DNA of 64,000 bases from Oopsacas minuta. Taxonomy: Eukaryota > Animalia > Porifera. Within the stretch, counting starts at the first letter, position 1. Each line of letters starts with the position of its first letter. The notes under the pieces were generated by a model. That model was not told where the DNA came from. It did no database searches and saw only the letters and a list, made by a program, of their open reading frames with translations. Location of the stretch: assembly GCA_024704765.1 (NCBI GenBank), contig JAKMXF010000321.1, positions 930,001-994,000 of the forward strand, in the 5' to 3' direction. Shown piece by piece: positions 1-58,000 of this stretch. The position numbers and the translations under genes are program-made.

Positions 1-3000
1 TTTATCTTCAGATTTAGTGGAAAGAATTGTATCCAGAGCACTGGTGATATCATGAGTAGCTTTTTCCATAGGAACAATACTTGATCTCTCAAAACTATCA
101 TCAAACTGGGTAGAGTTCATGGTTATAGTCAGCTGGCTGGGATTAGGCTTGACAGAGGGTGTCTGTGCATTTGTTGTTGTTGGTATTTCTTTTATAGAGA
201 ATTTAGGAAACCAACCATATTTATCGTTATAAGAACCGTACAGCCATTTGCTCTGAGTCTTCTCTTTAGTTACAGTTATGATTGCACCTTTCTCAAAGTT
301 AAGCTGCTCTGTAGTGCGTCCTTTATAGTTCACCTTAGCTTCCACCTGATAAGAATCCACTACTTGTTCATCAGGATCCTTCCCTCCAAGCGCAGATCTC
401 GGGAGATACTTCTGTGGCTGTGCGTATATATCCTCAACTGGTTTGCTATTTTGTGTTTCTACCAGCTCTTTGTTGTTATCAGAATAAGGTACTGGGATAG
501 GAGGAGCTGTACGTAAAGGGAGTTTCTGTACATAACTCTCCGGTACGATTCCACACTTCCCGTTAACCTCTGCTCCAACCCAACCATCATCTGGTCCATC
601 ATACTCTGACCTCCAGCTGAGTACATCTCCCTTCTTGAAGCTGAGCACCCCCTCCTCATTAGCCTCGAAGTCATACAGAGCAGAGAGCCTGTGGGAAGAA
701 CTAGGGGCGCTAGCAACAAGAGAGGAGTTCGGTTTAGAAGCAGGGTATTTTGTAGGTTTGGGAGGTTTAGTTATGCTCAAGTCATCAATTCCCACCTGCT
801 GATACAGAATGTTATCTTGTACAGAGGTCAAATCACTTTCACTACTAACAAACATAGAGGCAGGTCTCTGTGTAGCCTTCTCGCTTGCTAGCTGCTTAGC
901 TGATTTAGCATACTCTAATAATGTATTGCTATCTACGTAGGTATCGTATTGAGGTGTAGGATTTGTGTGGATAGGAGGAGAGGTGCTTGGGATTATTTTC
1001 TCATTTGGCGAAACAAATATGTCCTCTTTTTGAATTTGTTGTTGTTGTTTCTTGTTTCTGTGTTTTTGTCTTGGTTTTTGCTTTAGTTGTTCTAGACTCT
1101 TGTGTTGTTGATTAGGTTGTTGTGCGGAATTCATTTTCGTCGGGGTTGTATTGAAAAGGGCATTGCCAGCTGTTTCATACAAAGACTCAATTTTAACCTG
1201 AGGTTTAGCCACAGAAGGCACTTTAATAACTTTATTCTGATCAACAACTGGTTGAGTTGAGGTGAATATATTCATTAGATCTGTACTAGTATCCGTAGCA
1301 TGTTCATCAGCACTAGTGACACCTAAACTGCCGAAAGGATCGAATTTGAAACCAGACTGTGTTTGTACAGGTTTAGCTACAGGGATTTGTATTTGTTTAT
1401 TCTCTATTGACGTAATGCTCTTCTGTCTGTTAGCAAAGAATGAATTTACTTCCAACTGCTTCTTCCTGACACCAGATTCCATGCTCTGCACCTTCTTCTT
1501 AGCATCTTGAGTCTGTTTACGGACGCTAGCTAGATGAGTTTGTACTGAAGCTAAGTTGTCCTTAGCTATCTGCTCGCTAACATCTAGAGATACCTTGTGT
1601 CTACGATTATTCTCAATAGCAGTGTTAAGCTGTGTTACATTCTCACTGAGTGTATCATGATTCTTGAGAGACTCTGATTGAACATTTTCTCTGGACTTGA
1701 GATGTTTCTTAAGCAGCTCCTTACGACTGATAAGAGAAGTTAGTCTATTTGTTTGTGTCTTCAGTTGAGCTTGTAGAGATGTCTTGTCCTGTTGGCTGTT
1801 AGTTTCGGTCTCAGGACTTTGTTCCGATTGCAACTCTCTTTTAAGACTAGTCGTAAACTGCTCTTGATGCCAGAGACGAGACTCTAGGTCCACTTTACGC
1901 ATGTCTAAGTGTTCTTCTTCCGCTTGTAAGGAAGAAGCCTGACTTTTTAGAGAGTCTAACTCTTCATTCAGTCTCTTCCTTTCCTGTTCCAACTGCTCAC
2001 GTCTGATTCTTACACGCTCCCGTTCTTGATCCAACTTTATCTCCTTTATAGAGTTAGTGCGCCTTCTCTCATGCTCAGCTCTCTCTCTGTCTACTCGTAT
2101 CTTCTCCTCTGATTGCCTCTTCTGTAAAATCTCAGAAGCACGTTTGTCTTCTTGCTGGAATAGTTCACTCTTTCGTTTCTGCAGGAACTGCTGACCACGT
2201 AGGAAGTTCTCCCGCTTCATGTCCTCCAGACTGAGCTTCCTGGTCCTTCTGACGGTCTCAGATGAATCATCAGAGAACATCCCTAGTCCAAGCTCGCTCC
2301 ACTGCTTTCCGGTGTCTGTCTGTTTGTACATATCCATAGGAAACACACTAGACATAGACAGAGGCTGCTGTGGGATTGGAGCGGGTTGTAAAGATAGGTT
2401 TGATTGAGAGGGTAGGAATGTGTCAGAGGATAGGAGTAAGCCTCCCTGTGCTTGAGGAGGTGAGGGAGAGTTCTTGAATGACAGAGGTAAAGTGGATGTT
2501 TGAGAGGCAGAAGGTAAGAGGTAGTGAGGCAGCTTGTCAGGGAGTGTCAGCCCTTGTTTAATACAATCGATCAGATGCATTGTGAGTACAAACTCGAAGG
2601 AATTTAATCTCCCATCTTTATCAATATCAGATAACTCCCATATCTTTCCTAATGTTGTGTGAGAGAGAAATGATTTAGACATAGAAGCCTTGACTTGTAC
2701 TCCATTCAGGAAACCACTACGTGCTGTATCTAGAGTGTTGAACTGTTGAATGTACTTACGTCTTATGTTAGTGTCAATAGCAGGTAGATTAGAACTGTCA
2801 GGAGAACTGACACGGTTATAGGAGGGTTGAGAGGTCAGATTCAAGACAGCAAGGGGAGTAGAGGGTGTGCCTAATGGAGCGGGATAAGTAGGTGAGATAG
2901 GCCTTGAGGGGGTGATTAGAACCTCTCGTGGGATGAAGGAGGGTAGAGGATTACCTTTACGTACATTCTTCATTATAGACATTGCTAACTGAAACTGAGT

Positions 3001-3204
3001 GTAGGTAATACTCCCTTTCTTCTCTTGATCTACTAAGCTCCATATTTTCCCTAGCTGTTCGACTGATAGACCGGAAGTGAGAAAGAAGGAGTGAACTTTG
3101 TCTCCAGACAGAGGTTCAAGTGTGTTACCAACAAGCTCAATGTATTTCTGCTGGAATTGAGCTGATTCTTGTGGAGTGATGGAGAAGGCAGAGCTATTCA
3201 TCAT
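1..3204 (-). CDS. ITSN: Intersectin-like endocytic scaffold (EH-EH-coiled coil-low complexity-SH3-SH3...), 3' end outside the window
   Basis: Absent from the ORF track because it has no stop in the window. ATG at 3204 follows an in-frame TAG, and the frame is open at both ends and everywhere I checked (1068 codons). Two EH domains (LSGDKVHSFFLTSGLSVEQLGKIWSLVD; LGKIWELSDIDKDGRLNSFEFVLTMHLI), an E/R/K-rich coiled coil, a DPF motif (KFDPFG, about 1340), and two SH3 domains (ALYDFEANEEGVLSFKKGD...GWVGAEVNGKCGIVPESYV about 530-690; AKVNYKGRTTEQLNFEKGAII...WLYGSYNDKYGWFP about 200-360). Confidence 0.9.
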   Translation of the reverse strand, partial: MMNSSAFSITPQESAQFQQKYIELVGNTLEPLSGDKVHSFFLTSGLSVEQLGKIWSLVDQEKKGSITYTQFQLAMSIMKNVRKGNPLPSFIPREVLITPSRPISPTYPAPLGTPSTPLAVLNLTSQPSYNRVSSPDSSNLPAIDTNIRRKYIQQFNTLDTARSGFLNGVQVKASMSKSFLSHTTLGKIWELSDIDKDGRLNSFEFVLTMHLIDCIKQGLTLPDKLPHYLLPSASQTSTLPLSFKNSPSPPQAQGGLLLSSDTFLPSQSNLSLQPAPIPQQPLSMSSVFPMDMYKQTDTGKQWSELGLGMFSDDSSETVRRTRKLSLEDMKRENFLRGQQFLQKRKSELFQQEDKRASEILQKRQSEEKIRVDRERAEHERRRTNSIKEIKLDQERERVRIRREQLEQERKRLNEELDSLKSQASSLQAEEEHLDMRKVDLESRLWHQEQFTTSLKRELQSEQSPETETNSQQDKTSLQAQLKTQTNRLTSLISRKELLKKHLKSRENVQSESLKNHDTLSENVTQLNTAIENNRRHKVSLDVSEQIAKDNLASVQTHLASVRKQTQDAKKKVQSMESGVRKKQLEVNSFFANRQKSITSIENKQIQIPVAKPVQTQSGFKFDPFGSLGVTSADEHATDTSTDLMNIFTSTQPVVDQNKVIKVPSVAKPQVKIESLYETAGNALFNTTPTKMNSAQQPNQQHKSLEQLKQKPRQKHRNKKQQQQIQKEDIFVSPNEKIIPSTSPPIHTNPTPQYDTYVDSNTLLEYAKSAKQLASEKATQRPASMFVSSESDLTSVQDNILYQQVGIDDLSITKPPKPTKYPASKPNSSLVASAPSSSHRLSALYDFEANEEGVLSFKKGDVLSWRSEYDGPDDGWVGAEVNGKCGIVPESYVQKLPLRTAPPIPVPYSDNNKELVETQNSKPVEDIYAQPQKYLPRSALGGKDPDEQVVDSYQVEAKVNYKGRTTEQLNFEKGAIITVTKEKTQSKWLYGSYNDKYGWFPKFSIKEIPTTTNAQTPSVKPNPSQLTITMNSTQFDDSFERSSIVPMEKATHDITSALDTILSTKSEDK

Positions 3205-5219
3205 TTCAAGAGGCTAGTAATCTGAATAATCCAAAACTAATCAAGGATAATAATGACTACAGTATTCCCTGAATAAGCGTCGAGGTGTTTATTTATTTAG
3301 TGAGCTTATTATCGTTTAACTTTTTTACAATTTCTGAAAATACAAATGATCTTTGGAAACAGATTATCCAAATTTATTGCATTGCCTAACGAGGAGTCAT
3401 TTTATCAAGGAATTATTCTAGAGGGCGGTAATGAAATTGTATACGCTAGTCTTGGTCTTCGAGGCTTTTTCAAGCCCCGGCGCTTATTCAAGGAAATATG
3501 TATTTGTATACGACTTCATTACTTTACGCTGTGTCTGTGATAATATAAACATTCCAAGTTCAGGGGCATGACTTGTCAGACTTTAGACGTACGCTCGGTT
3601 ACTTTAATCATCCCTAAAATGTAGGTATTTCATTCAATCCCCATTCGGAAAGAAGTACAATCAAATAGTACATAACAGTTTATCTTTCCCTAAGGAGTAC
3701 ATCTTATCCAAATTCCACAGTAGATATTTGCAACATCGTTATAGATTCCGAGCGTAATTTTGTAATTTTTGAATAAAAAACGAGGTAAAAAGCACAACTA
3801 CTTAACAATCATCAGCTGGTGAATATCGCTGTATGAAAATTCTTATGATCAACTATAATTGACCATCTTCTCAAAATTGTGTCTCAATGGGAACTAAACA
3901 AAAGGCGCTAATAGAAGCAAAAATAAACGGTGACCCCAGAAGATTTTCGCCAAATTCATGGAAATTTTCATTTACAATGGAACCTCGTTAATACGGACAC
4001 GGCTAATGGATATTAATAACAATAGTTAGCTATAATCAGATCCTTACAATGGTTATCCAATTGGGATTACTCCAGAGAAAGCGAAGAATTTTGGACATTT
4101 GAATTCAAGATGCTCTATTACTCAGATATACATAGCTGACGAGAGAATCTGATGAATTTTGCTTAAACCTACCTGAGTTGTCTTGGGAACCGATTTCAAT
4201 TTCCATTCCCACAAGAGGTCTATGGGAATTCCCATGTTGGAGACCCATAGGTAAAAACGATTCCCATTCTCGTCTGAAAATTTATAGGAAATCCCGTGGA
4301 ATTAAATGGGGGTTGGGAATGGGGATTGAATTTCCACTCCCAGCACATGGTTAGATGGAAAATATACCAAACGATGGAGTTTGGTGAACTTAGATTAAAG
4401 TGTTAGTAGAATTGCAATACTCTTCAAATATTCTTATATTAATATTTTGTAAAACTCAGCTGGTGAATAGTGATATACGTACATGAAAATTTAATGTACG
4501 TTTCTAATTAGGAAGAAGATATGACTTACAAAAGTATACAGAATAGATTGAAAATTCTGCGCACAAGTTATGGCATCCTGATCATTTAAACCTTACAGGC
4601 CATGATTCTTCCACCCCGGACCATTTAAAGCGTTACAGCACCAAAGTCCTAACATTTGTCACTTATTTCGAAGCCGATATGGGGGTACCCCAAAAAATTC
4701 AAATTAATAATTATAATTTGGGTGGCCTTTCCAAATTGAATATACGTTGAATAACTTAAATATTTTGGGGAGTCCCTCATTCGAGAGAACAAATTGAGAT
4801 TAGTTGTTCATTAATATGAAGTAAGTTAAATACACAGGTTATGGGATGGACAAATTTGCGGTGCCTTACGAGTGTTTTACTGTACCGACTATACTACTAT
4901 ATAGCAGTGGTCCTCAATCGGTGTGCCTCAGAACGTTGTTAAGTATGCCACCAACATTACACTGATGTATAACAAAGTTGTTTAATATGATTTCATGTGC
5001 TTAGTTCTAGCCCTCTGTACTTGAAAATGCTAAAAGTCAACAAGAACTAATCCTTAAACACCAATATTTTGAGAATTATAATGAATATGATATCTGCAAG
5101 ATTTATAGTGCGTCATATCTAGTTCATTATATGTAGATTTCTTTAGGCAGAAAATATGAATAGAGAAAAAGAAATTACTATAACAACAATTATACATCAT
5201 TTCATCTATATTTCGAGTA

Positions 5220-41178: not shown

Positions 41179-44100
41179 CTACTCAAGTGAAGAAGCGAAT
41201 ATCTGCTTAAGGATATTAGGCACATCTCTAGTGTCCATACATACATACGCTTTCCCAACTGGGAGTCTATTCTTTAATATCATCGCCTGGTCTCCTAATG
41301 ATCCAATGAAAATGACGAATGCATTAACTCTTGGCTCGCTCATGAGAACATCTCCATACTCTCCTGCATTAATACCATATCTAGTGAAGTTAGCATCACT
41401 CAGTACTACTAAGTAATTCTGTTCTCCCTCCTGTCTAGCCAGCTCCCTCACAGCTCTCTGAGTAGCCTCTAAGGTAGTATCTCCACTCCAACAGTACTGG
41501 GAGTGAGCTAGCATCTTCTTCAACACCAATAATCTCTCATTCTCATTCGCAGGAACAGAATTATCAGCAACAAACTCTATTCTTGAGTCATCTCCAGAAT
41601 GTCCAGTTATTTCTAGCCGTACTTTCTCTTCAAACCCTTTGAATGCATCCAAAACCATTAACACTGACTCCATACTTCTCTCCATACGTCCATCAATAGA
41701 GTTAAATCTGTACATACTCCCACTCACATCCACAACAAGTCTCATCCGTCTAGCTTCAGTATCAGGTGTTCCAGCCTCCTTCTCCTCTTCTCCTCTCCTC
41801 ACGAACACGTTCCTCTCTCCGCTGATGCTGTCCACCAGCTTGCTATCATCGAGGTCTCCAGTAGTCTGATGTCGTAACCAACCGCGCTCACTGCCTTTGT
41901 TTTGTAAGGCCGTGAGCGTCTCCCTTAGAGCAGTTATCTGTGGCTGAACCTTGCTGAGATACTGTTGATATAGAGTAGCGTCATGACTGCTCATCTCTAT
42001 CTCTTTCATTCTCTCCTTAAAAGCTTTAAGTCCCATCTCTCTAGCAGCCTGCATAACTTCATCGGGAACATTACTTTTTTCTTCATCTGATAGCTGAAAC
42101 ACGTCGTGTCCTGCATCTAGTCTATATGGGCCTCCCTTACCTCCTAGTCCAGCCGTGTCCCTCCCTCCTGTCCCTCCAGCCCAAGTGTTGCCCCCTACAT
42201 GAGGAGCATTCTTTGGATCTACACGCCCGTGCTTAGGGTACTTAACATCCTCACCACTAAACCTCTCTCTACTCACTCGCACTCTATCTCCTGTTCCTAT
42301 CCCCACCATCTCACGCCAAGCAGCAAGAGAGGCCTCCAGAGACCGGGGGGACAGTTCCAGCTGCAACACGTGGCCTAATCTATCTGTTACTATTACGTCA
42401 TCAGTATACGGAGCAGAAGCTAGCAAATAATCAGTTGTATCTTGCAAGTTTAAGTACTTGATTGCATCAAGTTTAGGTAGAGTGTACTCTGTCAGTGTGA
42501 GGTTATCCAGATCAACAGCTTCTAGTGTAGTTTCGTTAATCCCATTATTAGTGGAAATAAGATTAAGAACTGATTTGCTTTGAGACAGAATAGCAGAAGA
42601 AACTGACTCAATAGCAGGAGATGGTCTGTCATGTGTAGATATCGTGTTTCTATTAGTTTTGCATGTGCTGTAGCCAGCATATATGTTTGAATTTGAGCAG
42701 ATTAACTGAGCTGAGTCAGAAGATTGACTGTTAGTACATTTCACGTTGAAAGCAGAATTAATCAATTGAGTATTCGATGGATCAACTGAGTGTATTTTAT
42801 CAGGGAAATAAGAGTTACTGTCTCTATGCGTACATAGAAATGCATTGTTGTCACTAGTAGCTAGCCATTTCTGCTTCTTAAGTTGAATCATATAGTCAAT
42901 AGGGAAGGGGAATTGTTGTCTATGTACTAGCATTGAATCTAAGTCAAAGCAGTACATAATAGAATCTCCCTTAGTATACGAGTATATTCTATTAGCCTCT
43001 GAGCACTCAGCTATGTTAATTTCCTCCTCACTCAGATTAATTCTAAACCTGTTAGCTAAGGTAGAAACAGCTGTCTTTGTCTTTAACCATCTTCCAGAAT
43101 GATTGATAGGATCTAGCCATAACCATGTTTTGGATTCAGACTCGAATAACACTATCTGACCATTGTAAGGTTCACTCAAGGGACATAATTTGAAGTTAGG
43201 ACTCCATCCCTCTCTCCTCGTAGAAGGGTAGCAGAAGAATAGGTCAGATACTAGTAGAGAATCAGATGATAAATGTGTTTTATTATCTTCTATATTAACA
43301 GGCGATTTGTCTGCTAGCTTCATTGTGTAGAGAGTAATAGGGTTATTAGCTATCAGGTGTAAGTATTGACCAGAATTTCCATCTGTAGATGAAGCAATCT
43401 TAATGTTATTAATAGAATTCCTCTGTTCTATAGGTAGAGACCAGGAAGCTACGATCTCTGTGAATCCCTGCCCTCTGTGATAGCTCCTGGCCAGAGGATT
43501 ATTGGAGACAGGGAGAGTGAAGAGAGAGCTGGTTTTGAGAGGAGAGGGTGAAAAAGCTTGTAGAGATTGTTTCTGTTCAGATATAGACCATGTAGAGAAG
43601 TGTCTAGCTGGAGGAAGAGGCGATTGTTTAGCTAACTTCACGTTGCTAGGAGAAGCACCTAGAGGTATGCCGTGTTTGTGTAGAACCTGCATTAGCAGTT
43701 TCTGAGTATCTCTGTCGAAACTGTCAAAATCAAACACATTCCTTACCGCATTAGCTAAGCCTTCTTGAGGGAAAAGAGCGAGATGCTTAGCAATGGCTAC
43801 AGACTCTCTGGTGGAGTACGGGTACCTCAGCGTTCCCTCGTCTGCCATCGTCCTAAGTTCCTGCATCACAGCCAGCAATCTCTTGATTACTTCATTAGAT
43901 AAAGAGGGAGCGTAACTCTTGATTAGAGACAGCTCTGAATTGAAGTCTGGATTATCTACAGCGTGTGTACTGAAGAGATCGCCCATACTAGCGAAAAAGT
44001 TGTTACCCATAAAAGGAAATCCAGGCCTATTAGCCAGCACTATCATTCTAAAATCTGAATGTACAGGAATTCCGTTAGTATCTGTGTTAACAGAGCTAGA

Positions 44101-46566
44101 AGGTAGAATCCGTCTTCCGTCAGGTAGATTAATACCACGCCCCTCTACAAGTCCTTTCAATACAGATGAGACATGTAGAGGAGCTTTATCTGCTTCATCA
44201 ACCACCAGTGTATAGCCCTTTTTCACAGCTTTGACTAGAGGAGAGTCCAAATACTCCAGCCTCCCTTCTCTCAGGACAGGTTGAGTAGTCAGACATTGTA
44301 CTGTACTATCTCTGTGTAGCTGAATATACTCTCTAGGACGAGACAGCCTCTGTAGTAATGTATCAGCTAGTTTGTTTTTACCCACTCCCTGATTTCCAAT
44401 CAGGAGTAAATGCTCTCCAGACAAATAATCAGCTAGCATAGCACTGAGTACTCTCTCTTGCTGCTTATTCTCATAGAACAGTATATCTGGTACTAGAGCT
44501 AGCTCCTCTGTAGTCAGGTTATGTACAGTTCTTACTCTACTCCAGTCGATAGCAGTGTCTGCTACACTACCAGTTGAATGGAGGTTGTGTCTAATCAGCT
44601 GTTCTTCTAGTGTGTTTCTTGCTAGAGGTGTGAGAAACCGGTAGAGACATGCCTTCTTAACTAATTCCAGGAGAGGAGTGTCCGTGTCAACTAATCGCTT
44701 GGCTAGTCTCAACAACTGTCTTGTAGAAAGAGACTGAGCTAAATATTGAGAAGTAACATCATTCTTATTCTCCCTCAGAGAGCTAATTAATTGAATCAGC
44801 TGAGAGAGACTAGTATTTCCTTTTAATTCAGGATAGAGCGTGTGTATTATGCTGAGCTCTATAGCTGGAGTCAGATCGGGTAGAGATTTGATTCTGAACA
44901 TAGCTAGCGCTTCACTACCTAGCCATTTGTTTGGTGTGACTTGAGTGGGAGCAGGTGGCTCACTAATCCCTATGATGCGGAATTGAGGGTGTACTGGATA
45001 AACTCTCTGTTCAGACAAATCACTCTCTGTCAGCTGATTCTCCTTAATCAGTTTGTTATACTGATCAGCTGGTATCAGTCTCGATCCGTCTGGTAGATAT
45101 ACGAATCTGTGAGTGACTAGACTCTGTAAGGAGGCTAAAGTACTTACATCCAGTCTTTGGAGACCATCCAGCACTGCGATGTTCCCTTTAATAGCTGCTT
45201 CTATCAATGGAGCATTCTTCCAGCCTGTGTTACCAGTACCAATATTTGTAACCCTCTGTTGTAGCAGATCTCTAGCAGTCATGTCTCTGTAGCAGAATAT
45301 CTCAGTAGTATCTCTGTTAACACGACGGGATAGGATGTCAACTAGCAGAGACTTACCACTCCCTCTACTGCCTACTACTGCTATATCTCCCATAGTGCAT
45401 AGCCTCTCTAACTCATGTAAAGCTGTAGCATGATACTGTGTCATTACAATGTTGTGCTGTAAGTAAGGTGAGATTACAGTGTCCAGTTGTGTGGTAGGAG
45501 TAGTACGAAGCTGTAGGTTAAATCTCTTAGATAAGGAGGTTACTACTTCTCTCAGCTTAGAGTCATACTGATGGAGAGGGATCAGATAATCTAATGCGCC
45601 TTTATAGCTCATTTTACCAGATTCTACGTCACGTAGCATAGATACTACCTGATGAAATGGAATGTCAATTTTAAGATTAGCTCCGGCGCTAATATTGCTA
45701 ATATCCATTTTGTGTAGTGTGTAGAGGATGGATAGGAAGTTGTTAACTTGATTAGGAGACAGCTGGGAGAGAGTATTAGTTAAAGAGGTAAGAAGTTCCT
45801 GGAATGGAATCTCTGGAATGAGTCTGGCTTGGAACCTGGATCTGAGAGGAGGATCGAGGGAGTGACCCCTGTAGGGTGGAACGGGCAGACCTAGAGCTAT
45901 AACTCTAAAGTTTTCACTGACTCTCTCAAGTCCCATCTCTTTCAACCTACCAGCAGACAGACTTGCTTGTAGCTTGTCAAACCTGTCAGGTGCCAAGAGG
46001 ATCCTACCATCCTCTAGTCGCATCTCTCTGTTCTCGAGTAGATTGTGTATCAGGGGTAGAACATTCCTCTCCGCTCTTTCTATCCCGTCTAGCACAAGTA
46101 TTCTACCTGCCAGTGCTGCTCTCACGGCTGCCTGATCCACATAAATCCCGCTACCGTCTACTATTTCTCTTCTTTGCTTCAGTTCACTTTCAGTAGCGTC
46201 TCTACTCAAACTCAAGTACTCAACTTCCCTACTTGTCAGTTCACAGTATGCCAACGCAACCTCACGCCTAGCAGGACCCGCTCCTCCCACCAAAAACATG
46301 TCTTGTCCTAAGAGGTCTTTCTGCATACACCATCTCAGGTGCTCGGCTAGACTGCCATTGATGAAGCTAACACCTCCAGGAGGGAGGAAGCCAGAAGGTA
46401 CTAAAGAAGGGTTTTTGGGAGGATGGACAAATTTTGAAATGTTACCAATATGGACAACTTCTTGAGAAAATAAGCGATGTTGCTGTCTGGAGTATTGTGT
46501 ACTCCTGAAGTGGGATAAAGCTGTGTTATGACAAGCTAAAGATTTCAAAAGAAAGGAGTTTGCCAT
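41179..46566 (-). CDS. VWA8: von Willebrand factor A domain-containing protein 8 (AAA+ ATPase modules plus VWA)
   Basis: Intronless 1795 aa. Basic/hydroxylated N-terminus resembling a mitochondrial presequence; AAA modules (LVGGAGPARR..VLDGIE; GSRGSGKS..VLDG; GNQGVGKN..VVDEADKAP); the hallmark HVGGNTWAGGTGGRDTAGLGGKGGPYRLDAGH; VWA with MIDAS DVSGSM. Confidence 0.97.
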   Translation of the reverse strand: MANSFLLKSLACHNTALSHFRSTQYSRQQHRLFSQEVVHIGNISKFVHPPKNPSLVPSGFLPPGGVSFINGSLAEHLRWCMQKDLLGQDMFLVGGAGPARREVALAYCELTSREVEYLSLSRDATESELKQRREIVDGSGIYVDQAAVRAALAGRILVLDGIERAERNVLPLIHNLLENREMRLEDGRILLAPDRFDKLQASLSAGRLKEMGLERVSENFRVIALGLPVPPYRGHSLDPPLRSRFQARLIPEIPFQELLTSLTNTLSQLSPNQVNNFLSILYTLHKMDISNISAGANLKIDIPFHQVVSMLRDVESGKMSYKGALDYLIPLHQYDSKLREVVTSLSKRFNLQLRTTPTTQLDTVISPYLQHNIVMTQYHATALHELERLCTMGDIAVVGSRGSGKSLLVDILSRRVNRDTTEIFCYRDMTARDLLQQRVTNIGTGNTGWKNAPLIEAAIKGNIAVLDGLQRLDVSTLASLQSLVTHRFVYLPDGSRLIPADQYNKLIKENQLTESDLSEQRVYPVHPQFRIIGISEPPAPTQVTPNKWLGSEALAMFRIKSLPDLTPAIELSIIHTLYPELKGNTSLSQLIQLISSLRENKNDVTSQYLAQSLSTRQLLRLAKRLVDTDTPLLELVKKACLYRFLTPLARNTLEEQLIRHNLHSTGSVADTAIDWSRVRTVHNLTTEELALVPDILFYENKQQERVLSAMLADYLSGEHLLLIGNQGVGKNKLADTLLQRLSRPREYIQLHRDSTVQCLTTQPVLREGRLEYLDSPLVKAVKKGYTLVVDEADKAPLHVSSVLKGLVEGRGINLPDGRRILPSSSVNTDTNGIPVHSDFRMIVLANRPGFPFMGNNFFASMGDLFSTHAVDNPDFNSELSLIKSYAPSLSNEVIKRLLAVMQELRTMADEGTLRYPYSTRESVAIAKHLALFPQEGLANAVRNVFDFDSFDRDTQKLLMQVLHKHGIPLGASPSNVKLAKQSPLPPARHFSTWSISEQKQSLQAFSPSPLKTSSLFTLPVSNNPLARSYHRGQGFTEIVASWSLPIEQRNSINNIKIASSTDGNSGQYLHLIANNPITLYTMKLADKSPVNIEDNKTHLSSDSLLVSDLFFCYPSTRREGWSPNFKLCPLSEPYNGQIVLFESESKTWLWLDPINHSGRWLKTKTAVSTLANRFRINLSEEEINIAECSEANRIYSYTKGDSIMYCFDLDSMLVHRQQFPFPIDYMIQLKKQKWLATSDNNAFLCTHRDSNSYFPDKIHSVDPSNTQLINSAFNVKCTNSQSSDSAQLICSNSNIYAGYSTCKTNRNTISTHDRPSPAIESVSSAILSQSKSVLNLISTNNGINETTLEAVDLDNLTLTEYTLPKLDAIKYLNLQDTTDYLLASAPYTDDVIVTDRLGHVLQLELSPRSLEASLAAWREMVGIGTGDRVRVSRERFSGEDVKYPKHGRVDPKNAPHVGGNTWAGGTGGRDTAGLGGKGGPYRLDAGHDVFQLSDEEKSNVPDEVMQAAREMGLKAFKERMKEIEMSSHDATLYQQYLSKVQPQITALRETLTALQNKGSERGWLRHQTTGDLDDSKLVDSISGERNVFVRRGEEEKEAGTPDTEARRMRLVVDVSGSMYRFNSIDGRMERSMESVLMVLDAFKGFEEKVRLEITGHSGDDSRIEFVADNSVPANENERLLVLKKMLAHSQYCWSGDTTLEATQRAVRELARQEGEQNYLVVLSDANFTRYGINAGEYGDVLMSEPRVNAFVIFIGSLGDQAMILKNRLPVGKAYVCMDTRDVPNILKQIFASSLE

Positions 46567-47631: not shown

Positions 47632-48756
47632 CTAATGATGAATTATTAAACTTTCATTCAGTTCATGCACTTTTATTCTGTATAAACCTGTCCCTCTAAT
47701 CGCCTTGTAAGCCAGTCTGTACCAACTGTGAAGGGTACACAGTATGAACGGAGAAATCAACATAATTAATCCGAAAACGCCAATAACATTTAATAATATG
47801 TTAAGTGGCTTTAGAATAGATGTTAGTAATGCAATCTGTTTTTCAGTCTTAAGGATCGGATCGTATGCTTCGTATATATCTGAATTGAATGGGAAAAAGC
47901 ATTTACTGAAGAATAGCATACTAATAAATACGTCGATCATATTACCTAGAGCGATGGATAAGATAATAAATAGAAATCCTGTACAAATGGTAGTTGAAGT
48001 GTATTCGAAGTATCTACATTGTTTTAACTCTTCTTTGTTATTTCCGTATTGCGTAAGACATTGTATTGATCTTATATTGAGTGTGACTCTGAATTGTTTC
48101 ACTGTTTTAACAAAAATACCAAAATAGACAGCTGAAGTTAAAATGAATAATATTCTGCCTATATTGAGTAGTGGGTATATACTCGATAGTATAATTATCA
48201 TGACACATAGTATAACGGTTGCGAATAAAAACCTTTTATTGTTGAAGACTCCATACAGGTATTCTACCTTCTTTATCCTCTTGGTAAGGTAATTCATTAA
48301 ACAAATTCCCAGGCAAAATATCAGTATATCTATTGAGTTACCTATGGAATTAATTACATTCATTGTTTCGATGGATGACTGAAATGTTTGTAGGAGAAGT
48401 ATATAAGTATCGTTTACATCTCGACAATTTCCGATTCTGTCAAAATAATAATTTTGATATTCAGAACTTAATGCGAAGTGATCAACAATTAGTTGTTGGA
48501 CAAAGAAACAAACAGCTCTTAATGTCTCAGCACAGTTGATCGAGATAAAGAAAACGTACTTCAAGATTTCAGTTTGATAATGATAGCAATACTGCGCATT
48601 AATGTAACCAGAATTTGTATCCGTTATATTATAAGCTGCCCCTCTCTTGTATATCTTATTCTGATGGATTCTTCGTAGAAATACGATTGTCCAATATAAA
48701 CTCATTGGTAGAAATATGATGATAAAAATAGTAGATAAAATAGTAAAAGTATACAT
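47632..48756 (-). CDS. Orphan seven-transmembrane protein, paralogue 2
   Basis: Intronless 374 aa, seven hydrophobic segments, colinear with 13099-14232 (CYHYQTEI, C-x-FP-x-N and YRIKVHELNxSL shared). Confidence 0.88.
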   Translation of the reverse strand: MYTFTILSTIFIIIFLPMSLYWTIVFLRRIHQNKIYKRGAAYNITDTNSGYINAQYCYHYQTEILKYVFFISINCAETLRAVCFFVQQLIVDHFALSSEYQNYYFDRIGNCRDVNDTYILLLQTFQSSIETMNVINSIGNSIDILIFCLGICLMNYLTKRIKKVEYLYGVFNNKRFLFATVILCVMIIILSSIYPLLNIGRILFILTSAVYFGIFVKTVKQFRVTLNIRSIQCLTQYGNNKEELKQCRYFEYTSTTICTGFLFIILSIALGNMIDVFISMLFFSKCFFPFNSDIYEAYDPILKTEKQIALLTSILKPLNILLNVIGVFGLIMLISPFILCTLHSWYRLAYKAIRGTGLYRIKVHELNESLIIHH

Positions 48757-52084: not shown

Positions 52085-55000
52085 TTATAACTTTGTTAAG
52101 GGGCTATCAATGTCTGTCAGCAGATCATCGATCTGGTCAATCAGGAAGTCTAGACTTTCAGTGGGATCTTCTTGTGGGGGTGGGATATAGTCAACAATTT
52201 CTCTTTTGGGTAGTTGGGTTGTTGAAATTCTTGAATTCATAAAAGAAGATTGAGAGGTTATGTTATCAAAAGCTATATTCCCCTCTTTATCTTGTATAAC
52301 GTTAAATTCGTGTTCTAGAATTGGTGGTGGGACTATAGCCTCCTTTAAGGTTCGTGGATTCTCTATTACCGACTTGAGAGTTGGAAATTCATCTGGTTGA
52401 ATTTCTATTACCTGATTAGGGGCTATTCGAGTTGTTGATGCATTATCAACCTGTGCTATTGTTTTCTGTAATTCAAGAAGGCTAACTTCTATTTCAAGCA
52501 ATTTAGGGATATCATAACCGATATTCTTGTGTTCTGCTTGATATCGTAGGGGACTATCTTCATAGGATATTGTATCAGGGTTAGCTTCTACCCAATTCAC
52601 CTCATCTGTATATTTGACTTTAGGTAACTGAATATTCGCATCACTCTCTGAAATAAATATTGTGTCAGCAAATGGATCGTTTCCTTGATAAATAATATCT
52701 CTAGAGTGAGTATCTTCTGCTTTAATAGCTTCTGGGTCAGTGAAGAAGATTGAAGAGTCCAATGCGCTGAGGTCAGTTATAACTGTATTTTTAGTTCTCT
52801 CTTCCAATGCACTTTCTTCTAGAAATGTCATGAGTTGAGTGATTTCAAAAAGAGGCGAAAGTCCAGGCTTTTCTGATTCCGTTCCCGGTGCCAATTGATT
52901 ACGCAAATATTCCAATCCCACTTCGCCAATAGCTGCTGGATTACCTTGACTCTGCCAAGGCTTTTCTTCCAGGAATACCATCAATTCATCAATTTCTACT
53001 ATAGGTGAGATAAGGCCCTGTTGTTTCGCTAACGCAAGAGTGCTACGCCTAAGCACGTCATCATCCAGTAGCCTAGCCAAAGATGACTGGGTAAAGACAG
53101 GGGGTTGACTCTCAGGACGAAACCGTCTAATTACCCTCCTCAAGAGCTTTGCCATAGATAGATAGATGCCCGAACGGACTAGAATAACAAGTAAGAATAT
53201 TATTCCTTGAGCAGATGCGAATATGGCAAAGAACCAGAATAACACACTCAACTTTATCGCTATGGCTAGAAGGCCAAAAGACCAGCCAATGAAAATCAAA
53301 GGATATAAAATGGAAATGGTAATGAGCATACGAATAATAGCTCTAGTAGATCTCGAAATCTCTGGTTCATCTCTCCTTACACATTTCAGTAAAACACACA
53401 CAACAATCACAATACAGGATATAGACACTGCGATAATAACAGCAGGAATAGCCACGAATAAGGTGGATATGTTAGTAGAAACATCAGTGTGTATCCAACA
53501 CACTCCAGGCATAGGTTCTACAGGTGACGTCACTACAGTTGTATCAAAAGGTGGAGAGATACTGTAGGCATGGAACCAAGTAAGTGTGATTAGAGTGTAA
53601 ATGAGGGGACCGAGCCAAGAGATACAGAAGAACAGAATGTTATACTTAACATTGATTTTGTAGTACGGCCATTTTGTCATCATGAAGATAACAATAGTTC
53701 CCATTAGCATCCATAGGAATGTTACCAAAATTAGATAACTGATGAGATACGAAATAATCTTACACGGAATGAACTGTAGGAAGTTAGCATAGGCTAGCTC
53801 CACACCCAACATGAACACCACATAGCAGAGAAGTAACGATAAAGTTAGATTGAAAAGAATAAAATGATAAATCTTTTTAAGAAGACGATATTCAAAGATA
53901 ACATAAACAATCATACTCAGTACCAAACAGATAATAGCGATAGTTGAGCCAATGTATGTGATGATGGGGAATACTGTAGATGTGGGAGAGATGCTATTGA
54001 TACCAAGAATAGCTGCAAAAGAAGTGAGGTGAGTGACCTCTACCAAGATTGTACTTTCTAAACTGCCAGATACAAGACCTATCCCACCACCTTGCCAGCT
54101 GGGAACTTCTGATTGAGTATCAAGAAAGCCTACAGCTACTTCTACTCGATACACATCCAGGTCAATGCTAGACGTGTCAATAGGGAAATTCAGTGTGGCT
54201 AGTGGATCACCTCCCTTCTCACTGATAACTTGGTTATTGCTGTACAGATGGAGAGAGACAAGAGTAGGCAAGATAATTATCTCTTCAAATACAGAAATGT
54301 TCAATCCTGAACTACCAAACTTCAGAGATGATGTATCCGTCACAATACTGGCTAGATTCTCAATCACGACAAATGACGTACAGCTAACCTCACCGTTAGG
54401 CATAATGGATACTGATGGAGACTGGTTATCCTCTCCAATCATAATGTTACCAGCTGATACACTTGTGCCCAATGCTGTATCCCCAACTGATAGTATATTG
54501 AACCTAACTCTGTCATATTGTATACTGGTAGTTGTACAGTTTTGTGCGGCTAAGTTCTCAACAAACTTATCCGTACTATTCAATAGAGATTCAATTACAG
54601 GTCTCTCATCTTGTAGAGCTTGAAGTAGATTAATATTAGAGTCTGATACGAGATTGCTAATTATTCTAAAAACATTATCCAATTCCATTTGCATTGTATT
54701 CATGTCTAAATTACTGCTTTTTTCCTCCAGTATGTTAAGGGTGATAATTACATCTCCAAACATCATAGGAGGTTTAGCTAGGAGAACATCTAGCAACGTT
54801 TCCAGCTCATCCGTTTTTTCCAAGGTAGCGTAAGCATCAGATACACAAGATGATGTGTCAGGATTGCCCCATGTGCCATCTGTAAAGCATTGTCTGTAAG
54901 CTATATTACCTTCTGTCGGACACAAGACCTCTCTGTTAGCACCACCTGCAGTACAAGGCCATGTTATATTGAATAATGAGTCTGTTTCTAGTATACATAC

Positions 55001-58000
55001 ATCCTCACACTCCTCACTAACCTCGCTAGCTTGAGGTATACATCTTGATTGATTGGGACACATGTCTACACAAAGAGAGTCTCCGCATATGACAAGATTA
55101 TCTGGTAAGCCATCTCCATCAGTATCGAAACTACAATTGCTACCATCTCCATACAGTCCTATGTTACAGGAGCAGGAAGAATCTATAGGAAGAACTAATG
55201 ATTATGTTTCGTGATAAGGAAATGAAATGAAGTACATGATACAAGGCAATTAGGGTACATTGAATTGAAGAATTCTTTTGACAGGTTGCGGAACCCTACG
55301 CTAAATCACATTTGTTATAGACTCCTTTATTATAATCGATAGTACCTCGTCAGTACGAACCAGGTACGGAGCAAAGTGCAAAGGGGCTTAAGCCCATTTT
55401 GTAATAGGGCATAAGTCTGGACTTGGACTTAAGCCTTTATTGATCAGCTTCAAACACTTTCCAAGCCTTTCAATCCTTTAAAAGCAATATATATACTTAT
55501 ATACCTGGTCATAATCAAAGTTCTTAGACTCTCTTGTCTTGTATATATGAATTACAAGTTATACTTCTTACATATAGTATATTCTAATATTGATGGCTTG
55601 CCCATTTCAAATATGGGCTTAAACAGGGTTTGTGTTGAGCTTAATCCTTTTGTACATGGGCTCGGGCTTACCTCCATGACTGACTGGACGGTCCCGCCCG
55701 GTCCGAAATTCGTATTTACAGATGTCATTTGAAAAATAATCTATTGAAGAGCCCCAAAATAGGTCCGTACAAACCAGAAATTCGTATCAATCATGTTCGT
55801 ACTAACGATGTTCTACTTAAATAGTATAACAGTGTGCCCTAGCACAGACACCTATACACGGACGTGACACTCTCACATCACGGTAAAATTCGTATAGGCC
55901 TGATTTGATCCACCATAACTTATGGTTTACTTGGAATTTTCCATGTTTTTTGTGTCTAAAGAAAATCTATTAGTAAATATCATCATGACTGACTCACAAC
56001 TGGCTCAATTTTTCGAGATAACTAACCAAAAGCCACGTAACAGCTCCAGTATTATGACAGAAGGCCATTAAATGGAATTTTGATGGACCATGGATAATAA
56101 AAGAAATAAAATTTCTGCAAAAATTAACCTGCACGTAGTGCGAGTAAATCCCGTCGCGTAGCCCAAAAGCATCGACTAGTGCAACTGTTTCTTACTTATG
56201 CTAAAAGAAGGGACAAAGCGCAAGGATATTTCCTCCCGTCCGCAGCGAACTGGCAAGCGTAGCGCGCTAGTAAGCCGATTAATTCGGAACAGCGTTAATC
56301 AGCCATCACCCATTTAAGATAATCAGTAATACTAAACTAAACTGGCCTTTACAAACAGACATAATAGTGATTTAGTCTTAGTTTCCCAAAGACAACGAGT
56401 CTCGGATTAAAGAGGTCACTGAACCTTCATAATCCGATATTTTTCGCTGTTCCAATGTGTGCCCGATTAGACAGGTAAGTGTAAATATACAGACATGATT
56501 TAGAGCTGTAGTACATGTATAATTAATATATACGACTACTTACTTTTACAATCACAAGCAGGTACTGTACACAAGACAGTATGTTGTAGTTCCTGGATGT
56601 ATCCATCAGGTGAAGTGATACAATCACATACAGTAGATTGAGTTATGAAATGAAGAGAAAAATCTGTAAGGCAAGCAGACAAGTTAGCTGAAAGATCTGG
56701 AGAGGGAAAACTGTTGATTTGATCAAAATTCACATTTGTTGCGTCAAACCAAATACTCAAAATATTAGAGTTTCGTTGCGTATGCAGAATGGGAATTCCT
56801 AATCCAGTTAGTAGACTTCTGGTATGATTAAGACATAGATAAGTATAATCGACAGTAGGATAGTAGAGAAGAGAGAATATCAGCTGAGAAGGAGTAATAA
56901 CTGCAGTGAATGATAGAATCTATATGTGGGAGGATATCAAATATAAGAAAATAGAATAAAGCAAATTATTGATTAAAGACACACCTTTGTTATGCTACCA
57001 AAAAATATACATTCATTGGTAATACCAGACCATTCTAAGTTAGATTCACAAGAGCGTTCCATCAACAACTGGTCAGGATCTTCTACATTCTCTGTAGCAT
57101 TATGCGGTCCAAATAGATCGGAGCAAGGGATAGATATAGTAGACCCATTACTACTCGAGTCCCAATACACACCCATCTCCAGTCTACCCTCACAAGCATT
57201 GTCTGCTGCAGGATAGTCTATACTGAATTCAGTTACTTCTACCAATTCAGTTACATTCACTCTTAACTCATATCTCCCATTCAGCTCACTACTCACATTC
57301 TTCCATTCAATGGAAAACAGATAACTGTTATAACTCATCCAATACTGACTGGGTAGAAAGATACAATCAACTACAATTGATACACCCTCCCAATCACTGA
57401 TATCTACTTCAATTAGTCCCACAGAGAAGAGAGAAACACTCACATTTGGACACACATCAGAACACAGACTAGCTTCTAGAGAACTAACAGCCGCTCCTAT
57501 CAACACTTGACTACTGTTTACAGTAGATGCTCTCACAAGTGATCGGGTATAAAGAGTTGGTAGATTTGAGTTCTGAATTATTACCAGCAGTCTCTCATAC
57601 AATTTTACTTTATCATCCTCTGTGTCTTCTATACTTAACAGCAAGTAGTGTAGGGTAGAATCTCTGTCAGCAGAAGGGAGAGAGAACTCAAGAGAGAAGG
57701 ACTCTAACATAGTGAAATTCATAACTGTATTATAACATTCCTGCCAGTCCACTTCACAACTTAGAACCGTCACCTGACAGTTGACAGATACAGACAGGTT
57801 GAGAGAGATCTGATCATCTACACTAGAGAGTAAGATAGACCTGTTGACTACTTCCTGTAGAGGAGATGCCTGTAGGACAGTAACGCCCATCTCTAGCTCT
57901 ACCGTGTTGGAGAGGTTGAGAGGACACGAGTAGAGAGAGGAAATACAACAAGAAGAGTCAGAGCAGTAGCTGTAGACAGCTGGGCACTGAAATATGTTAG

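Follow-up and report, generated by a model that had tools for sequence, protein, structure and literature searches.

The cytoplasmic tail of an adhesion G-protein coupled receptor (GPCR), encoded on the minus strand of a 64,000-nucleotide stretch of DNA from the sponge Oopsacas minuta (hereafter the window), is probably an intrinsically disordered platform with multiple docking motifs, carried by a receptor of the type LRR-EGF-HRM-GAIN-7TM. Judged by its sequence, the tail holds one helix that is genuinely similar to the leucine-aspartate (LD) motifs of paxillin, and this helix is located at the C-terminus beside a PDZ ligand. A duplicated unit nearer to the membrane is predicted to be a family-specific, N-capped amphipathic helix and not a canonical LD motif. 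An earlier, sequence-only reading had proposed that the tail motifs are LD-like and form a built-in LD scaffold. This proposal is partly supported by the comparisons below: in part for the C-terminal helix and weakly for the first copy of the unit (unit A), while it is contradicted for the second (unit B).

The window contains the last exon of the receptor gene as an open reading frame (ORF) of 992 aa, which corresponds to residues 944-1935 of P0006 (KAI6649455.1 / A0AAV7JKN4). KAI6649455.1 has 1935 aa, is annotated as 'G-protein coupled receptor [Oopsacas minuta]', and possesses LRR, EGF, HRM, GAIN-like and 7tm_2 parts, followed by the tail. The parts of the gene in the window are:

52085..55063, minus strand: last exon and ORF, 992 aa, with 992/992 identity to P0006
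56973..59351, minus strand: upstream exon and ORF of the same gene, with LRR and EGF domains (Pfam)
53198..53968, minus strand: 7tm_2, ORF residues 366-622 (Pfam, E 1.8e-17)
52088..53197, minus strand: cytoplasmic tail, ORF residues 623-992, with the conserved part from residue 660

The 7tm_2 match (63.9 bits, Pfam cut-off 20.6) identifies a secretin-like 7TM domain of class B2, and sequence matches in the PDB over transmembrane helix 7 (TM7) are to ADGRE1, ADGRL3 and ADGRD1. Adhesion modules are found in the ectodomain, where LRR_8 (44.5 bits) and HRM (33.7 bits; ORF residues 22-75 in Pfam) both exceed their cut-offs and an EGF-type match (FXa_inhibition, 26.1 bits) lies under its cut-off of 33.4 bits. 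A cleavage motif of the HL/T type, VTHLTSF, is present about 20 residues N-terminal of TM1. The Pfam GPS model has no match in the window ORF at E <= 0.1, and a weak one in a paralogue (19.2 bits, cut-off 22.5). By its domain content the receptor is an adhesion-class GPCR (class B2), and the same assignment in the sequence-only reading is borne out by 7tm_2, HRM and LRR. Because 7tm_2 occupies residues 366-622, about 370 aa follow TM7, which confirms the long tail that had been put at about 350 aa.

The tail consists of about nine short conserved islands between fast-evolving spacers (identity 0.11-0.27 in the spacers vs 0.46 in the 7TM domain). Identities listed here are to the window protein and come from shallow alignments of 6-8 sequences:

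53024..53080, minus strand: island 1, residues 662-680, LARLLDDDVLRRSTLALAK, two short helices in AlphaFold2 (AF2), 66% identity
52952..53017, minus strand: unit A, residues 683-704, GLISPIVEIDELMVFLEEKPWQ, a predicted N-capped amphipathic helix, 81% identity
52886..52924, minus strand: island 3, residues 714-726, EVGLEYLRNQLAP, a predicted helix, 68% identity
52802..52867, minus strand: unit B, residues 733-754, PGLSPLFEITQLMTFLEESALE, the duplicate of unit A, 74% identity
52673..52711, minus strand: THSR island, residues 785-797, THSRDIIYQGNDPF, the highest conservation in the tail, 94% identity
52445..52510, minus strand: central amphipathic helix, residues ~852-873, IPKLLEIEVSLLELQKTIAQV, 49% identity, predicted local distance difference test score (pLDDT) ~81, the highest in the tail model
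52370..52420, minus strand: island 7, residues 882-898, PNQVIEIQPDEFPTLKS, 62% identity
52106..52174, minus strand: C-terminal acidic helix, residues 964-986, with overlapping LDFLIDQI and IDDLLTDI, 62% identity
52088..52099, minus strand: C-terminal L-T-K-L-COOH, a candidate class I PDZ-binding motif, with a conserved end in homologues

A word search with the tail alone retrieved five homologues (36-44% identity) from four separate ENA assemblies. Both units, whose conservation in orthologues bears directly on the sequence-only reading, are kept in all five. When 1.84 billion representatives were searched exhaustively by profile, only 6 proteins came up, all of the same clade or fragments; beyond the word search, this added only the protein of the window and four fragments. 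Since only these proteins were found, the tail seems to be clade-restricted and without relatives outside the clade. The tail and two homologous tails have no match in Pfam at E <= 10; a profile search of PDB sequences matched TM7 and nothing beyond it, and the ESM Atlas gave no usable match. In the own genome (a 61.46-Mb assembly; the 61-Mb genome of this glass sponge has been published, PMC10280926), a search with the whole tail found the gene itself and no paralogue. In a shorter ENA protein, P0009 (280 aa), the segment with island 1, island 3 and both units is missing; retained are the central helix, the island of THSR type and LDDLLTSF, which is near-canonical.

Comparison of the C-termini gives good support to the class I PDZ ligand. 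The window protein ends in SLDFLIDQIDDLLTDIDSPLTKL (52088-52156, minus strand; stop codon 52085-52087), so that its last three residues, TKL, agree with x-[S/T]-x-Φ-COOH. The five homologues end in SRI, TRI, TKI, TRI and SRI, and the fragment P0007 in TRI. Together with P0009 these make 8 C-termini, and the support for the ligand derives from the form [ST]-[KR]-[IL]-COOH in 7/8 of them, in agreement with the class I ligand that T-K-L had been taken to be. PDZ ligands are common on the tails of adhesion GPCRs (e.g. PMC9539791), and at least 63 PDZ matches are present in the O. minuta genome.

The LD motif has the core L0-D-x-L-L-x-x-L in a short helix within disorder, and degenerate patterns of it give many false positives (PMC7703752). 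The strict form LDxLLxxL has 0 matches in the window protein and all homologues. A relaxed pattern, [LIVM][DE]x[LIVM][LIVM]xx[LIVM], matches the tail three times vs 0.275 expected from shuffles (P 0.0016): once in unit A (IDELMVFL) and twice in the C-terminal helix, and never in unit B. The pattern scoring favours the suggested LD likeness in part for the C-terminal helix and weakly for unit A, and fails it for the strict core and for unit B.

For a graded comparison we built a position-specific scoring matrix (PSSM) from the five human paxillin LD peptides (LD1-5) printed in PMC2572193, with which the LD1 and LD4 strings quoted in the sequence-only reading agree. The ungapped PSSM scan replaced an hmmsearch with a short LD hidden Markov model, which ranked matches poorly. 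As a positive control the PSSM recovers the LD motifs of the sponge's own paxillin (18.8, 18.1, 12.2, 11.5, 9.4 and 8.8 bits). Among 115,376 six-frame positions, the C-terminal helix has rank 8 (12.3 bits), unit A rank 16 (10.9 bits) and LDFLIDQI rank 35, with unit B outside the top 40. The scores of the C-terminal helix and unit A both fall inside the range of 8.8-18.8 bits of the sponge paxillin motifs, and the IDDLLTDI of the C-terminal helix is very close to VDDLLQDL, the LD1-like motif of that paxillin. Moreover, the pattern [IL]-D-D-[LMV]-L-[TS]-[DS]-[IF] of this helix is kept in 8/8 sequences.

The strongest form of the LD proposal, in which each of unit A, unit B and the C-terminal helices serves as a functional LD motif and links the receptor with FAK/PYK2's FAT domain, vinculin, parvin or talin as in paxillin, appears unlikely to us. 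It is favoured by the enrichment of the relaxed pattern, by the resemblance of IDDLLTDI to the sponge motif, by helices that lie in disorder as true LD motifs do (PMC7703752), by LD-binding domains encoded in the genome, and by unit A, which shares D+1, E+2, L+3, M+4 and L+7 with human LD4 (LDELMASL; PMC2572193). However, the strict core is absent, the receptor scores are below those of the two strongest sponge paxillin motifs, and the Asp at +1, which defines the register on FAT (PMC5818605), is not maintained in the duplicated unit.

This unit occurs as GLISPIVEIDELMVFLEE at 52964-53017 and as GLSPLFEITQLMTFLEE at 52814-52864, both on the minus strand. The duplication noticed in the sequence-only reading is therefore confirmed, with limits that had been quoted 2 nt off. 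A profile-profile alignment of the units (hhalign) covers 24 columns with a probability of 92.8% and E 3.9e-7; the duplication is real but short. Unit A has Asp at +1 in 6 orthologues, and unit B has an invariant Thr there in all six. In the short-tailed paralogue, the single unit has Asp or Lys at +1, and in one copy Lys at +4. Across 12 aligned units, including the single unit of the paralogues, the LD Asp position is occupied by D, T or K and only P5, E8, L12 and L16 are invariant. The invariant Thr of unit B and the Lys of the paralogue at the Asp position indicate that the duplicated unit is not under LD constraint, and it seems to be constrained as PIxEΦxxLxx[FY]L instead. When the own genome was searched with a profile of the 22-aa unit, nothing but the two units emerged, apart from a chance match (E 0.15) to an unrelated 402-aa protein, WHIM/DDT-like by eye.

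The short-tailed paralogue is observed in other assemblies, as the second gene of a tandem with the long-tailed receptor (L009:15968-18379, L010:9472-11859; downstream genes in L002 and L008). It is composed of an LRR ORF and a 7tm_2 ORF of about 800 aa, with a tail that contains just one unit, KPIQELDDLKRYLEERPFD or QPIQELKDLVAYLNERPFD, and ends in TRI (TTRI). In O. minuta, other genes are found at the position matching the downstream paralogue.

The GBA motif of GIV, VTLQQFLEE, resembles the units in LxxFLEE only. A GBA-motif reading of LxxFLEE was rejected, as the pattern published for this motif, [LIMV]-[TS]-[LIMV]-x-[DEQ]-F-[LIMV] (PMC4760084), matches 0/8 tails.

A further explanation is that the islands are signals for trafficking or modification, namely acidic dileucines [DE]xxxL[LIM] in units A and B, DPF/NPF endocytic motifs, a Tyr phosphosite, or PxIxIT-like calcineurin docking (PIVEID, PLFEIT). 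For instance, EIDEL[ML] and EITQLM fit the dileucine pattern in most orthologues, a loose PxIxIT pattern accommodates PI[VI]EID and P[IL]FEIT, NPF adjoins the C-terminus in 5/8 sequences, IIYQG is nearly invariant, and the THSRDIIYQGNDPF island has a conserved Tyr. However, these patterns are short and degenerate, and the sites are found in predicted helices, although ligands of the dileucine and PxIxIT kinds are extended when bound. Moreover, the window protein has no NPF, and DPF occurs in only 3/6 sequences. We regard this explanation as very improbable.

Structure prediction is consistent with isolated helical motifs. The AF2 model of the 333-aa conserved tail, from a 6-sequence alignment, has a mean pLDDT of 47 and a predicted template modelling score (pTM) of 0.21, and shows isolated helices exactly at the conserved islands. 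They include tail residues 32-40, 80-109 and 308-326, with flanks of pLDDT <50 from this shallow alignment, the two helices of island 1 (tail residues 2-8 and 14-22) and that of island 3 (55-65). According to the model, the tail is largely disordered with short helices, the setting in which LD motifs occur. A globular fold, which would speak against the sequence-only reading, is not what AF2 gives; the helices stand in sequence of low confidence.

It is also conceivable that island 1, island 3 and the two units, which make up the initial 100-110 residues of the conserved tail, fold together into one small domain of helices or pack back against the core of the receptor, so that the hydrophobic faces would be structural or autoinhibitory. 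Conservation is at its most continuous over these four islands (0.66-0.81), where the order helix, GL.SP turn, helix recurs. The first 112 tail residues modelled alone reach pLDDT 59 and pTM 0.43, with pLDDT 71-76 at tail residues 11-40 (island 1 and unit A). However, this pTM is <0.5, the linkers at tail residues 49-56 and 67-80 have pLDDT <50, and Foldseek finds no match of the 112-aa model in the PDB at E <= 0.001. The repeat spans 24 columns only and not whole helix-loop-helix halves, and P0009 lacks the entire segment while it retains the rest of the tail. Such a domain, or such docking on the core, seems unlikely.

Several points weigh against a disordered docking platform with an LD-type element. 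No RNA runs holding the stretch were found. P0009 ends in P-K-I, which is not a class I ligand, as the sole exception among the 8 C-termini. The degenerate LD pattern matches >6000 human sequences (PMC7703752), and LD-like patterns are common by chance. The best background match of the LD PSSM (16.5 bits) is TDELETLLDVLLAK in the receptor ectodomain (54773-54814, minus strand; ORF residues 84-97), a clear false positive; as it tops the background, an LD-like pattern easily arises outside a cytoplasmic context. The region of island 1 and unit A might pack intramolecularly, judging from its pLDDT. Finally, the alignments are shallow, and hence the absence of a domain in the AF2 models is weak evidence.

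Candidate partners are encoded in the O. minuta genome. Its paxillin gene, located via LIM matches and PSSM scanning, lies in G000:C266:56000-65999 (L016), on the minus strand at ~603-3638. The exons carry the LD-type motifs VDDLLQDLQN, PLDILEQQMAALE, LLQLDKLLESLNEF, LQGLNDLMASLEDI and LGELDNIVGTLQ, followed by LIM-domain exons (three exon pieces). The Pfam Paxillin model (PF03535) and a 14-position LD profile gave no genome match, and both blanks are uninformative. Another LIM-containing gene, in L014 (G000:C22:242518-243225, minus strand), is a 323-aa ORF with a Met start and four LIM matches; in size and shape it is PINCH-like and not paxillin.

An exon for helices 3-4 of the FAK FAT domain (Pfam positions 69-124) was found at L003:1501-1668 on the plus strand (G000:C66:1290332-1290499). 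A TAG directly upstream of it suggests a splice acceptor. Introns separate this exon from the remainder, and none for helices 1-2 turned up within 1.5 kb of it. The GIT orthologue at L004:193-1842 (plus strand, G000:C335) is an uninterrupted frame of 549 aa, with a GTG start as listed, that possesses GIT-type ANK repeats, two SHD repeats and the GIT1_C paxillin-binding domain. Its N-terminus is probably incomplete, with no ArfGAP match. Three vinculin-family loci are also present. When the GIT FAH domain (L004:1450-1839) and the receptor's final 45 residues were predicted as a complex, the ipSAE values were 0.12 and 0.17, for which the mark is 0.34; the prediction weighs neither way.

If the tail is a docking platform, the receptor would be tethered to a PDZ scaffold through [ST]-[KR]-[IL]-COOH, and the tail helices may be sites that fold on binding to cytoplasmic adaptors. 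Among these only the acidic C-terminal helix, [IL]DD[LMV]L[TS][DS][IF], is a likely LD-type ligand; its putative docking surface would be an LD-binding helical bundle, for instance FAK FAT, GIT FAH, talin, parvin or vinculin. As for the duplicated unit, PIxEΦxxLxx[FY]L[EQN]E, it may serve as an amphipathic helix of this receptor family for some partner. The C-terminal helix lies 4-6 residues from the PDZ ligand, so that two partners may compete. We suggest more tentatively, as a possibility of rather low probability, that the paxillin-LD1-like helix could let the receptor bring in an LD-binding protein, such as FAK or GIT, with no need of paxillin, and that PDZ and LD-binding domains would exclude one another from binding at the last 30 residues.

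Helices in receptor tails are known to dock on FAK FAT, for instance P3 of DCC (PMC5818605) and the CD4 endocytosis motif (as cited in PMC7703752). By analogy, the sponge helix near the receptor C-terminus could dock on the four-helix bundle of FAT as in DCC/neogenin and CD4. However, DCC/neogenin belong to a different receptor class without sequence relationship, and their P3 has no LD Asp, whereas the sponge C-terminal helix has an Asp. The tail resembles paxillin in having short acidic amphipathic helices in disorder, of which the C-terminal helix and unit A fit the relaxed consensus (PMC7703752, PMC2572193); it differs in that they are on a receptor tail and not on a LIM-domain adaptor, lack the strict consensus and, in unit B, lack Asp+1.

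Among adhesion GPCRs, GPR124/GPR125 (ADGRA-type) bind Dlg1 via a C-terminal PDZ ligand (PMC9539791). The sponge receptor shares with the ADGRA type an N-terminal LRR, HRM, a putative GAIN-like region, the class B2 7TM, a long tail and the class I PDZ end. However, no Ig domain was detected in it, and EGF and further modules are inserted; the likeness is one of layout. As in latrophilin, BAI and ADGRV1, a long disordered tail bears a PDZ ligand and additional segments, which bind effectors in the known tails (PMC12236479, PMC13729602), but there is no sequence similarity past TM7 and the sponge helical units are clade-restricted. In Pfam, PDB, Atlas and profile searches the tail was not alignable to any described receptor. 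Among disordered adhesion GPCR tails that combine a PDZ ligand with docking helices, it may be regarded as a lineage-specific variant. The sequence-only reading had noted the arrangement as not known from described adhesion GPCRs, and no paper in the literature searched combines 'LD motif' and 'adhesion GPCR'.

How adhesion GPCR tails are coupled to the cytoskeleton and scaffolds is poorly understood, and sponges serve to infer the ancestral animal toolkit for adhesion and signalling. A direct, lineage-specific link from an adhesion GPCR to the adhesome would follow if the proposed docking is true, with the PDZ ligand and the LD-type helix as a simple wiring, in a syncytial animal, of a class B2 GPCR to the integrin/FAK adhesome. 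Should the helices have other partners, the units would still mark an undescribed, clade-restricted docking motif.

Two other ORFs are seen on the minus strand of the window. The one at 47632-48756 encodes 374 aa and has no Pfam match, and the one at 41179-46566 encodes 1795 aa with three dynein-related AAA_5 domains (E 4.3e-76) and is midasin-like.

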